Below are positions 15,870 through 59,873 of a stretch of 64,000 nucleotides of DNA, piece after piece; the stretch's first letter is position 1, and every line of letters starts with the position of its first letter. The notes beneath the pieces are model-generated. The model saw only the letters and a program-made list of their open reading frames with translations. It did no database searches and was not told the DNA's origin. The stretch covers positions 24,118,001 to 24,182,000 of the forward strand of contig NC_043000.1 in assembly GCF_006345805.1 (NCBI RefSeq), given 5' to 3'. The position numbers were made by a program, and so were the translations under genes. This DNA comes from Octopus sinensis. Taxonomy: Eukaryota.

Positions 15870-16152
15870 ATGGCTCTTATGAGGAACACTATAGTTTCAG
15901 CTGTTTTGCTGTGTTTTCTTTTACCATATCTTAGTCAAGGTTTGGTTTTAAGATGTGACAAAGAAGTATCAAACACTTCTAATGAACTAAGAATTGCGGT
16001 CATTTTGTCTGCAATGACAAAAAACTTAACGACAAATCAGTGTTCTGTGTTTCAAAATACAACCATTCCAAACATTGGAGCAATTCAATGGATTATTGAC
16101 AAACTTAATGCTCCATGTGGAGACATAAAACTTATCCCACAATACGATATTG
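15870..16152 (+). CDS. Exon 1 of tandem Venus-flytrap receptor-like gene: signal peptide and start of VFT1
   Basis: ATG followed by hydrophobic MALMRNTIVSAVLLCFLLPYLSQG (S-Q-G cleavage pattern). LRIAVILS...C...GAIQWIIDKLN...LIPQYDI resembles the class C GPCR N-terminus (LGGLF..C..AM.FAIDEIN..LLP..LG). Donor G|GTAAGT at 16153, phase 1. Confidence 0.85.
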
Positions 16153-17266
16153 GTAAGTATTTTATAAAAAAATATTTCAATAATTAAAACTGTTTAAATG
16201 TATGTAAATGTTATAATTATTGTGATAAATTTCACAAAGAAAATTTCAAAATGCTTTTTCCTGAGATTAAATTATTGATAAATTAACTAAAATGGCAGTA
16301 ATGTTGGTTCCTATGAAACAGCCATGTGGAATTGGCAATTAGCATTACTTGTAAATTATTGATATTTCTTCTGTTTTACATTAAAGTTTGGGTGGAATTC
16401 TGCTTTTAGCATGCAATGTAACTCCTCACAACTTTTTTTTTCTTTTTGGAATTTCCAAAAGATTTTTGTGAATTTGTGTTCTATGGGAATTCATATTACT
16501 ATGAAGAAAAAAAAATGATTTTCTAATTTTTCGAATTTTTTAAAACTTTTTTTGTTTCTAATTTTTCAAATTGCAAAAATAAAAGTCACAGTTTAAAATA
16601 TGGGAAGTCTGAATTTTCTTTTTTGCCTAAATCTCAGCAATAGACCATTTAATGTATTTGTGGGGAGACAGATATTGAAAAACATCAATGCATCATATTG
16701 ACAAACAAGCAATGACAATTTGAGGTGGTCATGTGATGTACTAAAAATAACATCTAAAGACCCCAATAACTTTTTTTATCTTCCAGAAGTTTCAGAAAAT
16801 GTTTGTAAATTTGAGTTCTACACACAGACGTTCAAAAAAAAAAATTGTGTGTGATTTAAGGGGTATTTAGCTATTATTTTTAGTACATCTCATGACCACC
16901 TCAAATTGTCAATCTGATGTATTATTTGTCAATCTGATGTATTGATGTTTTATAAACTTTAGTGGAATTCTGCTTTATGCACACAGTAGAAAAGGATTTT
17001 TACAGCTAGATGCCCTTCTAAATGTCTATCACTTTACAGTGTGGACTGGATTTTTGCTATATACAGAGGAGAGAGGACAAATTGGTAAGAAAAGATCTAC
17101 AAACATTAGGACTTTCAGAGGTGATGACAGGGGACTGAGACTGTTGGTGGTTTGCTGTGCCTGAAAAGGCATGTCAAGCTAAATAATATTTTTCTTACTT
17201 TCCCCTTACATTACCACATGTAGTTTCTATTTCCTTTTTGTAACATATTTCTATTATATATATATA

Positions 17267-18028
17267 CCAGCATTAAAGACCCGTTGTTGCCGGGTCATAG
17301 TGCTAGTGCATGTATATATGTGTATATATATGTGTACATATTACATGTACATCTATATATATACATCTACACATAAAATACAAAATACAAAGTTATATCT
17401 TGATATCGCTAGTGATAACAATACTCAAAATATATTACAGACTGGAATTGTTAGCCCATCTCTTGTAATTTCGATCAATTGTATCTTGTCCTCACTCTTG
17501 TATAGAAGTGTGGCTACAATCCAGCCTACCTCTACTTCGGGGGGGGGGGGCAGCGGCATTTAAAATTTTTTTCCAGGACGTCCTACATCCCAGATATAAA
17601 GGTAAAAGTAAAATATTTCCACTTTGCAAGTTTGAGTCGAGTACTCCCTTGCACGCTCCGTTGACTCGAACCTTGCTTCTATTGTGGCAAATTTACCGCC
17701 TCTGATTAGATACCTTTCATAGTCAGACTTACTACATATAATTCAATTGTTATTATTATTTTTATTGTTAAAGTGAAAGTATCTGACATAAAATAGAGAA
17801 ACGTTTTTGTTTCCCTTTTAACACGTAATACTGAAATAGTGGAGAAGATATGATATTGCTATGGGCTTGCTCTAGGCAAGAAGTTGAACATTTTTTTTGC
17901 CGATGACACTCCCCGGACCCTAAGTAAGGCATGTGTAAAATTTGAATGAAATTGGTTGTGTAGTTCTCAAGTTTTAGGGAAACACACAGACAGACAGACA
18001 CACATTTTCAGTTTTATATATATAAAGA
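17267..18028 (-). mobile_element. Non-autonomous Helitron-like element
   Basis: The minus strand starts A|TC-TTTATATATATAAAA and ends with a gacccg/cgggtc hairpin and CTGG|T. Contains (caga)n near its 5' end. Confidence 0.6.
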
Positions 18029-57598: not shown

Positions 57599-59620
57599 TA
57601 TTATTATTATTATTATTATTATTATCATTATGAATATTAAGGTGGTGAACCGGCGGAATTGTTAGCATCCTGGGGAAAATTTTTAGCGATATTTTATGCA
57701 TCTTAAATTTCTGAGTTTAAAATCCCTTGTACTAAAATTTGAAACTGTTATTGTCATTAGGGTGGCAATGTTGTTGTCATTAGGGTGGCACACTGGGCAA
57801 GGTGCTTAGCCACATTTCGTCCACCTTTACATTCTGAGTTCAAATTCTGTTGAGGTTTACTTGGCCTTTCATCCATTATTATTATTATATTATTATTATT
57901 ATTATTATTATTATTATTATTATCATTATTATTATTGCCTTTGTGGAGGCGCATGGCTTAGTGGTTAGAGTGTCAGCATCATGATCATAAGATTGTGGTT
58001 TCGATTCCAGAACTGGGTGATGCATTGTGTTCTTGAGCAAAACACTTCAGTTCATGTTGCTCCAGTCAGCTGGCAAAAATGAGTAATGCTGCAATGGACT
58101 GGCATCCCATCCAGCTGGGGAACACATACACCATTGAAACCGAGAAACTGAGCCCATGAGCCTGGCTAGGCTAAAAAAGGCAGGATTTATTTCTTGCAAT
58201 GGCCCTGTGGTTAGGGCAGCAGACTTGCAGTCAGAGGATCGCGATTTCGATTCCCAGACAGGTCGTTGTGTGTGTTTATTGAGCGAAAACACCTAAAGCT
58301 CCACGAGGCTCTGGCATAGGGTAGTGGCGACCTCTGTTGTACTCTTTCGCCCCGACTTTCTCTCACTCTTTCTTCCTGTTTCTTGAGTAACACTGTGATG
58401 GACTGGCGTCCCGTCCAGCTGAGGGGAACACATACGCCACAGAAACAGGGAAACCAGGCCCATTAGCCTGGCTAGGCTTGAAAAGGGCACATACATACAT
58501 TATTGCCTTTGCACAGCTTCTAACGCTGGAGATGTGCTACAGTGTCAGCAGTTCACTACCAGTGAACTAAGGTAACACCTCTTATTTTTCGAGTGCCTTC
58601 CAGAGTATTCGAGTGATTCCAAGCAGTGTTGTTTTCTGCAAGTGCTCCACTCTTATTGTAGCCCCTATTTGTTCCACGTACTTCTCGAGAATTTTGCTCA
58701 CTGTTCCCAGGGCTCCTAACAATTATTGGTACTACTGCTACGTTTTTCATCGACCACAACTGCTTAACTTCCCAAGCTAACCTGCCATATCTCTCGACTT
58801 TTCTTTCTTCCTTATCACACACCTTGTTGTCAGCTGGGCATGCTACATCCTAGATCCAGCATAGTTTGTTTTCTTTCTCAATTAAGACTATGTCCGGCTT
58901 CCTATTCTATTATTATTATTATTATTATTATTATTATTATTACTATTATTATTATTATTATTATTATTATTATTATTATTATTATATTGCATCTGGCTTA
59001 TAATGTATCATTAATTCATTTTTCTCAAAACTCCACCAACATGATAGAATTCTGTGACTTTATTTCCCTTTGCTCCTTTTCATGGATGTGGTGGCTGTGT
59101 GGTAAGTAGCTTGCTTAAGAATGATATGGTTCCGGGTTCAGTCCCACTGCGTGGCACCTTGGGCAAGTGTCTTTTACTATAGCCTCAGGCCAATCAAAGC
59201 CTTGTGAGTGGATTCGATAGACGGAAACTGAAAGAAACCCATCATATATATGTATACATATATGTATGTGTGTGTGTATATGTTTGTGTGTCTGTGTTTG
59301 TCCCCCACCCCTTAACATCGCTTGACAACTGATGCTGGTGTGTTTAAGTCCCCATAACTTAGCGGTTCGGCAAAAGAGACAATAGAATAAGTACTAGGCT
59401 TACAAAGAATAAGTTCTGAGGTCAATTTGCTTGACTAAAAGGCAGTGCTCCAGCATGACCACAGTCAAATGACTGCAACAAGTAAAAGGGTAAAAGAGTG
59501 TACATTTCTTCGTTTACATGTGTACTATATATTTTCTCTTAATTAACAATTAAATTGAATACAAATTTCAAGTTTACATTATTTTTAACTTATTCTGCGG
59601 TAAACTTCTTTACGTTTCAG

Positions 59621-59873
59621 ATTGGTTCATTTGGCAAAGAAAATGGTTTTACCCTTGATAAAACTAAAATGAAGCTTTATAATCATGATGGAGAGGAAAT
59701 ATCTGAATTGAAACTTGGGTGTTCTGAAAATGTTAATTGCTGCAATAACAGAACAATCCAGAAAGAACCCAAATCTTCAACTACTGATACTGGAGTTATT
59801 TTGGCTGCAGCAGGGTTCTTCCTTGTGATTGTTCTTATTGTCATTGGAGGACTTATGATATCAAAAATGAGAA
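59621..59873 (+). CDS. Exon 7 (end of VFT2, short Cys stub, single transmembrane helix); gene continues 3' of this exon
   Basis: Acceptor cttctttacgtttcag, phase 0. IGSF...L parallels exon 5 VGEY. Hydrophobic GVILAAAGFFLVIVLIVIGGLMI (59792-59860) is followed by basic SKMR. Donor A|GTAAGA, phase 1, with no stop codon. No downstream exon recognised in the window. Confidence 0.82.

Follow-up and report, generated by a model that had tools for sequence, protein, structure and literature searches.

What kind of protein results when two Venus-flytrap (VFT) domains are placed in tandem ahead of one transmembrane (TM) helix? The question is raised by a 64,000-nucleotide (nt) stretch of the Octopus sinensis genome (NC_043000.1, positions 24,118,001 to 24,182,000, forward strand; hereafter the window), in which the gene LOC115210858, listed in RefSeq as 'uncharacterized protein', spans 15870-59873 on the + strand. 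In the pharmacology of class C receptors each chain is assumed to carry a single VFT, the VFTs to form a dimer, and a Cys-rich domain to relay to the seven TM helices (7TM). A first-pass annotation, made from the letters of the window, saw a double-VFT chain reaching a single helix, and took it for either a single-pass receptor with an unseen cytoplasmic effector or a double-VFT G protein-coupled receptor (GPCR) lacking the Cys-rich domain. We find that the gene and its two-VFT, single-TM architecture are genuine and conserved, that the product is a 1014-residue type-I membrane glycoprotein, and that LOC115210858 is a member of an old family of VFT1-VFT2 single-TM proteins in lophotrochozoans. 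Judged from its sequence, the protein would form dimers and bind amino acids, as a receptor-like or tethered binding protein that is no GPCR and acts via partners, a reading to which we give a probability of roughly 0.6.

The gene and the end of its transcript

Splicing the seven exons that lie in the window yields 2998 nt, or 999 codons with zero stops, every internal border being AG/GT and the phases running 1,1,0,0,2,0, with a phase-1 donor closing exon 7. This reproduces exactly the exons, phases and frame of the first-pass annotation, and the translation is that of residues 1-999 of RefSeq isoform X1 (P0030, XP_029635474.1, 1014 aa) and of isoform X2 (P0001, XP_036357809.1) over residues 1-915. 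The features of the gene are as follows, window positions being those of L001 (CM016862.1:24123870-24194116) plus 5869.

15870..16152, + strand: exon 1; ATG, signal peptide (aa 1-24, 15870-15941) and start of VFT1; phase-1 GT donor
31661..31792, + strand: exon 2; VFT1 lobe 1 with the loop cysteine C126; AG acceptor, GT donor, phase 1
36358..36515, + strand: exon 3; VFT1, in which 'SLGDHAV ... PVISPVIEQ ... FTVPM' correspond in degenerate form to the Ser/Thr/Asp ligand-binding motifs of mGluRs; followed by phase 0
42760..43485, + strand: exon 4; C-terminal two thirds of VFT1; Pfam ANF_receptor 5.6e-9 by itself
45746..45972, + strand: exon 5; end of VFT1 (to ~45796), linker, start of VFT2 (from 45884); phase-2 donor
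45797-45883, + strand: inter-domain linker, aa 451-479, within exon 5
51053..52271, + strand: exon 6; VFT2 core with mGluR-like conserved amino-acid-binding motifs; Pfam ANF_receptor 3.5e-40
52272..52275 (GTAA), + strand: first unit of a tandem donor, GTAA then GTAG, the second donor giving isoform X2
59621..59873, + strand: exon 7; last VFT2 strands (to 59695), stub, TM helix, SKMR, phase-1 donor
59696-59791, + strand: three-cysteine stub, aa 941-972, in exon 7
59792-59860, + strand: TM helix, aa 973-995, in exon 7, followed by SKMR at 59861-59872
66070-66116 (window-equivalent, outside the window), + strand: terminal exon 8, encoding (N)HGDGETIPKVVYGD and then a stop

All seven exons and their splice sites occur at the same positions in O. 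bimaculoides (L004), a conservation far beyond chance. The gene is 44 kb long in O. sinensis and 27 kb in O. bimaculoides. Exon 1, which matches RefSeq P0001 and P0030 without difference, has 91% nucleotide identity between the two species, the spliced genes differ only by indels of -3 and +6 nt, all in frame, and the spliced O. bimaculoides translation is the annotated P0002 over 1000 aa.

A locus of 44 kb with introns full of transposable elements invites the suspicion that two adjacent single-VFT genes have been falsely joined, and fused multi-VFT models do exist in databases (the Polypterus 'CASR partial' entries, with 10 stretches, and possibly the Polymixia one look like such fusions). 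However, exon 5 bridges the two domains, its open frame running from the last part of VFT1 through the linker into the first part of VFT2; the splice phases agree from exon to exon and are kept in O. bimaculoides; and VFT2 has no signal peptide of its own. In addition, two intronless Logan transcript contigs of relatives, L002 (4411 nt, 1246-aa open reading frame (ORF), cuttlefish-like) and L003 (5002 nt, 1317-aa ORF), hold both VFTs, the TM helix and the tail in a single ORF. A false join is in our judgement highly improbable.

Pfam finds in isoform X1 two stretches of ANF_receptor (PF01094, 1.4e-57 overall; 6.9e-19 and 68.5 bits for VFT1 alone) and nothing else. There is no match to NCD3G (PF07562) or 7tm_3 (PF00003) in the full protein or in exons 7+8, nor to Pkinase, Guanylate_cyc or Lig_chan in the full protein. 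Only three cysteines, C949, C955 and C956, precede the TM helix, and hydropathy has two peaks only, the signal sequence (19-residue window aa 8-26) and the TM segment (aa 973-991, Kyte-Doolittle value 2.95). Pfam and hydropathy thereby agree with the plan first proposed, of signal peptide, two mGluR-type VFTs, three-cysteine stub and single TM, and the domain search gave the two ANF_receptor hits without NCD3G that had been expected. Among the features of class C GPCRs the ANF_receptor VFT is present, and 7tm_3 and NCD3G are absent; the nine-cysteine NCD3G domain is absent in GABA-B also. Without a 7TM, the 'mGluR5-like' labels that such proteins carry in databases are wrong.

What follows exon 7 is given by isoform X1. 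Exon 8, located 2.07 kb beyond the window and entered at the acceptor TTACAG, adds 15 residues and then TAA, giving the 1014 aa and a cytoplasmic tail of 19 residues, SKMRNHGDGETIPKVVYGD, with no recognisable motif. The phase-1 donor of exon 7, past which the ORF continues, and the existence elsewhere of class C GPCRs with 2-5 VFTs and no NCD3G would fit a gene that runs on into more distant exons for TM2-7, a kinase or a cyclase, its product being a class C GPCR with two VFTs or an enzyme-linked receptor. Against this, X1 stops 15 codons on; tblastn with 7tm_3-bearing relatives detects no 7tm_3 similarity after exon 7 in ~16 kb downstream, and the long tails of the cuttlefish, scallop and limpet orthologues likewise have no tblastn match there; no sizeable non-transposon ORF was found downstream of exon 7; and the next called gene, ~5 kb on and on the same strand (L001 65305-70247, window-equivalent ~71174 onward), encodes an unrelated CN_hydrolase+HIT protein of the NitFhit type. 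Indeed, all of the at least 49 clusters of related proteins described below, some of them transcript-derived, have one TM and a non-enzymatic, low-complexity tail. From these results we conclude that the gene has no unseen kinase or cyclase and no TM2-7, and regard effector exons further downstream as barely credible. Following the gene from exon 8 onward leads to a short tail, and both the cytoplasmic effector and the double-VFT GPCR of the first-pass annotation fall away.

All annotated tail versions in Octopus are short and domain-free (19-26 aa, ending -VYGD or -VSQC), and the terminal peptides of O. bimaculoides (P0002) and O. vulgaris (P0031) have no significant matches in the O. sinensis window or L001, nor do the cuttlefish, scallop and limpet tails. 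The other annotated end, that of isoform X2, is reproduced by the second donor, 4 nt downstream of 52271; its use shifts the frame, so that translation stops ~40 nt into exon 7, the TM is lost and the C-terminus reads ...KKVNWFIWQRKWFYP. The tandem donor context at 52271-52275 is kept in O. bimaculoides. Because its stop lies >200 nt before the last junction, X2 is possibly a target of nonsense-mediated decay (NMD), and it may be an NMD-type by-product or splicing noise rather than a true secreted form.

Intron 7 carries, 175 nt past the exon 7 donor (60047-60531), ~160 imperfect CTA/CTG trinucleotides, organised in a higher-order unit of 33 nt; all three + frames and at least two minus frames of the array are open (poly-Thr/Ala, poly-Leu, Tyr/Cys), and no model treats it as coding. 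Transposon debris lies upstream of the gene and in its introns (3125-3385, 7501-8175, 33299-33613, 54718-57662 and 61542-62069), comprising Mos1-type mariner HTH_48 (1.1e-18), non-LTR RVT_1 (3.2e-14, 4.6e-5) and an integrase-core fragment (3.2e-4). On the minus strand and in the remaining window only transposon debris and microsatellites were found.

An old family with two VFTs and one TM

An initial homology search brought up proteins of 1250-1390 aa with two VFTs and one TM in Acanthosepion, Pecten, Ylistrum, Batillaria, Patella and Mya. HMMER, run exhaustively over 1.84 billion representatives, then gave 191 proteins at E <= 1e-30, and among the best 150 of these the VFT1-VFT2-single-TM plan, called by family-built hidden Markov models and a hydropathy scan, is present in at least 49 clusters at 50% identity. 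Further members were named in Haliotis (three paralogues), Bulinus, Pinctada, Solemya, Dreissena, Plakobranchus and the brachiopod Lingula, so that the family spans cephalopods, bivalves, gastropods and Lingula. Eleven aligned members (A1) share the plan, with one TM at an equivalent position and 65 invariant columns, and the TM is kept in all three Octopus species and throughout the family.

VFT1 and VFT2 are each closest to their own counterpart in other species, and the tandem is therefore older than the divergence of cephalopods, gastropods and bivalves. The two domains score 47-97 bits against one another and 95-157 bits each against mGluR-like VFTs (cephalopod VFT1 excepted, at ~55 bits). 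An internal duplication cannot be demonstrated from such mutual scores, and any duplication would be ancient.

By score the closest relatives of the octopus gene are long-tailed orthologues (Sepia-like, Pecten, Patella, Haliotis and others), in which the TM is followed by 150-750 residues of disordered, Ser/Thr/Pro-rich sequence. These tails nearly always end in V or I (-ISRV seven times, -SLVI, -FII, -FMI, -ENYV; seen in P0003, P0004, P0006-P0008, P0010-P0012, P0046, P0049 and others), an end resembling a PDZ ligand. Both the long tail and the PDZ-like V/I end are missing from the octopus proteins.

Orthologues are already annotated in RefSeq and GenBank, a point the first-pass annotation had left undecided, but every family entry is named 'uncharacterized' or 'hypothetical' or is mislabelled as 'mGluR5'. 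The labels 'metabotropic glutamate receptor 5(-like)' and 'GRM4-like' are borne, despite the lack of a 7TM, by P0031, P0014, P0016 and P0081, and the O. vulgaris model (P0031, CAI9721922.1, 746 aa) skips most of VFT2. In open-access full texts, to which our literature searches extended, we found no description of animal tandem class C VFT proteins, nor did we find one in the eLife 2018 glutamate-receptor phylogeny. The architecture first called unusual can accordingly be kept under that name, and the lophotrochozoan search that had been proposed recovers it widely. What is new is the family, for which we found no literature description; the gene was already annotated and the domain superfamily is very well known.

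Predicted ligand binding, selection and proposed function

The AlphaFold2 model (24-sequence alignment) has a mean predicted local distance difference test (pLDDT) of 76 and a predicted TM-score (pTM) of 0.53, with pLDDT ~90 for VFT2 and ~75 for VFT1, a disordered linker (aa 450-479, pLDDT <50), a disordered stub (aa 957-973) and a helix at aa 972-1000. Foldseek matches it to mGluR VFTs in the PDB at E ~1e-32, VFT2 superposing on them at TM-scores of 0.75-0.87 (up to 0.87 on the target). By sequence the nearest solved structure to VFT2 is mGluR3 (3.6e-45, PDB 2e4u), then mGluR4, 2, 1, 8, 7, 5 and CaSR, and the best 60 of 100 solved-structure matches are all mGluR or CaSR, with natriuretic peptide receptors (NPR) not among them. 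The octopus VFT1 is highly divergent, with solved-structure matches to T1R3 (1.5e-5) and mGluR5 (2e-3) and none to NPR.

HMMER alignment to mGluR3 and a joint alignment of VFT1, VFT2 and class C VFTs were used to read the binding site. VFT2 keeps all five alpha-amino-acid-binding positions of class C VFTs, and these are given below together with that of mGluR1 K409; the mGluR residue roles and numbering follow the mGluR structures.

mGluR1 S165, mGluR3 S151: in octopus VFT2 the Ser of the SSSV motif (invariant S588)
mGluR1 T188, mGluR3 T174: S611 (Thr in Patella)
mGluR1 D208, no mGluR3 residue listed: D631, invariant
mGluR1 Y236, mGluR3 Y222: Y659, invariant
mGluR1 D318, mGluR3 D301: the Asp of the GSDAWG motif (D/E in the family)
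mGluR1 K409, mGluR3 K389: R834, in an invariant 'DQR'

The conservation suggests that VFT2 binds an amino-acid-like ligand, and makes plausible the amino-acid receptor that the first-pass annotation had proposed as a candidate. The VFT2 alignment has no counterparts of mGluR3 R64 and R68, the arginines that hold the distal carboxylate of glutamate, and the family has a 2-residue insertion there; on this ground an amino acid or a derivative of one is the probable ligand, which need not be glutamate.

VFT1 has taken different courses within the family. In scallop, limpet and Batillaria it keeps all five positions, whereas cephalopod VFT1 has lost the Thr and the first Asp, and octopus the Ser too, so that in octopus only the Tyr and the last Asp are retained. 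The lobe-1 loop cysteine C126 is invariant in the family and aligns with the class C VFT loop cysteine, which in mGluR and CaSR forms an intersubunit disulfide. Most VFT2s lack a loop cysteine.

These features suggest a division of labour. The membrane-proximal VFT2, with its five residues and an Arg at the mGluR1 K409 position, would be the ligand sensor, and VFT1, which is under purifying selection and keeps the loop cysteine with three binding residues lost, would serve dimerisation or regulation. Having no effector domain and a tail of 19 residues, the octopus protein cannot signal alone; it would act through a lateral partner, be this a co-receptor or a ligand-presenting subunit, or serve as a tethered ligand-binding or clearance protein. 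The long tails of most other molluscs, with their PDZ-ligand-like ends, suggest scaffolded localisation, which the octopus lineage would have given up.

Comparison of O. sinensis with O. bimaculoides shows both VFTs to be under purifying selection (dN/dS 0.38 for VFT1 and 0.35 for VFT2, dS ~0.18). Exon 7 behaves otherwise. Its counterpart (L004 26172-26424) differs by 42.5 nonsynonymous and 2.5 synonymous changes (dN 0.25, dS 0.05; dN/dS ~5; binomial against neutrality p = 0.008; Fisher against exons 1-6 p = 3e-7), and its nucleotide identity of 84% compares with 89-93% for the flanking introns. Against O. vulgaris, changes affect 5/84 residues of exon 7 and 5/634 of the N-terminal part (p = 0.003). 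The anchor that exon 7 encodes is either unconstrained beyond hydrophobicity or under diversifying selection.

Alternatively the gene might be a relic under relaxed constraint, decaying in the octopus lineage and without real function: the octopus VFT1 binding motif is lost, the long tail and PDZ-like end are gone, the overall dN/dS is 0.45 and the terminal exons disagree among species. Yet neither O. sinensis nor O. bimaculoides shows a broken ORF, all indels between them being in frame, the dN/dS of the VFTs (~0.35-0.38) is clearly below 1, with 137 nonsynonymous against 97 synonymous changes over ~3.8:1 sites, and the five VFT2 motif residues are all kept. We hold decay to be very unlikely.

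A weightier, if still somewhat unlikely, alternative is that the protein is no receptor at all but, tethered or secreted, buffers or clears a ligand that it sequesters, the anchor being a mere tether; it might then be likened to NPR-C for natriuretic peptides or to the molluscan acetylcholine-binding protein for acetylcholine. A 19-residue tail without recognisable motif, the loss of the PDZ-like C-terminus of the long-tailed orthologues, a stub and TM evolving at or above the neutral rate beside two constrained VFTs, and the annotation of a TM-less isoform would all be in keeping with such a role; on the other hand that isoform, X2, may be splicing noise or an NMD target, and the TM is retained in three Octopus species and the whole family.

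The preferred reading remains a dimeric, partner-dependent amino-acid-binding protein, and several points weigh against it. Its function is read from alignment only, and the loss of binding in VFT1 from a motif alignment at ~25% identity. The mutual arrangement of VFT1 and VFT2 in the model is uncertain at a pTM of 0.53. For a receptor, a whole-gene dN/dS of 0.45 is rather relaxed. Each of the three Octopus annotations ends in a different terminal peptide, unrelated to the other two, so that the exact tail is the least secure part of the gene model, and the octopus junctions are supported by RefSeq models, the transcripts being those of other species.

More tentatively, tandem-VFT single-pass proteins might form a bilaterian-old amino-acid-sensing branch that works without a 7TM, each chain pairing a degenerate, dimerising VFT with a ligand-binding VFT and giving its output through PDZ scaffolds or partner receptors, the octopus form being reduced to a tethered amino-acid-binding protein with a diversifying anchor. 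One chain would then unite within itself what T1R or GABA-B receptors achieve as heterodimers, and the diversification of the octopus juxtamembrane and TM region may reflect, for example, co-evolution with a partner. This broader proposal is possible but doubtful. If it is true, then together with the multi-VFT GPCRs of amphioxus, hemichordates, gastropods and mites it would mean that VFTs can be concatenated as sensor arrays.

In either case a family of Mollusca and Brachiopoda that carries two VFTs on one helix and no effector poses the question of how domain closure is read out, and offers a natural test system for VFT-to-VFT coupling and for the role of a distal, degenerate VFT. The octopus protein is a candidate amino-acid sensor or buffer in cephalopod tissues, and for annotation the 'mGluR5-like' labels should be corrected in proteins unable to be GPCRs.

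Comparison with known receptors

The HMMER scan that brought out the family also found proteins with 2-5 ANF_receptor domains and a genuine 7tm_3 but no NCD3G (P0035/L005, P0037, P0040, P0044, P0082, P0112, P0132). They include the following.

Branchiostoma XP_035696128.1: 2 VFTs + 7tm_3, the same 1307-aa length in three annotations, with a separate 3-VFT protein
Saccoglossus XP_002735016.2: 4 VFTs + 7tm_3
Physella XP_059178375.1: 5 VFTs + 7tm_3
the mite Dinothrombium: 4 VFTs + 7tm_3
a 9030-nt intronless transcript contig: one 2802-aa ORF, multi-VFT + 7tm_3

These multi-VFT GPCRs resemble the octopus protein in their tandem mGluR-type VFTs, in the absence of NCD3G and in a short C-x(3-5)-C-x2-C stub ahead of TM1, and in those of protostomes the N-terminal module scores as 'V1-type' and the others as 'V2-type'. 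They differ in ending in a full 7tm_3. Transcripts, among them intronless contigs, support these proteins, which occur in several phyla, and we found no paper on them. A derivation of the single-pass family from these GPCRs by loss of TM2-7 is conceivable but gains no support from BLAST, in which the modules are as near to ordinary single-VFT class C receptors as to the octopus-family VFT2.

The mGluRs share with the octopus protein the class C type of VFT, VFT2 aligning end to end with mGluR3, and a stub that begins like the start of the Cys-rich domain. The octopus chain departs from them in having two VFTs, one TM, no nine-cysteine NCD3G and no 7tm_3, and its VFT2 differs from mGluR3 in missing the counterparts of R64 and R68.

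In overall form NPR-C (NPR3) is similar, with an ANF_receptor VFT ectodomain, one TM and a short non-enzymatic tail in a disulfide-linked dimer, but its single VFT is of the natriuretic-receptor subtype and its ligand a peptide. Of the features of receptor guanylyl cyclases and NPRs the octopus protein has no kinase-homology or cyclase domain and no NPR-type VFT. Venus kinase receptors and receptor guanylyl cyclases are likewise single-pass with an extracellular VFT (PMC3703292, PMC4026697), and they differ in having one VFT and an intracellular tyrosine kinase or cyclase, domains that are absent from the octopus protein.

That known single-pass VFT receptors have one VFT, as the first-pass annotation stated, is too strong. 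Trypanosome receptor adenylate cyclases have two VFTs and then a single TM (PMC6027212), and the bacterial sensor kinases BvgS and EvgS carry tandem VFTs outside the membrane (PMC4352136, PMC5573083); beyond these we found no other tandem-VFT single-pass precedents. Their VFTs are unrelated or distant, they bear a cytoplasmic cyclase or histidine kinase and they are not animal proteins, so the likeness is architectural and not familial.

Ionotropic glutamate receptors (iGluRs) also stack two clamshells in each chain, the first of the ANF_receptor type, and distant iGluR matches reach ~40% identity over a 109-aa stretch of VFT2. In iGluRs, however, the second clamshell is of another binding-protein class and is split by the pore domain, whereas in the octopus protein both clamshells are VFTs of the mGluR type.

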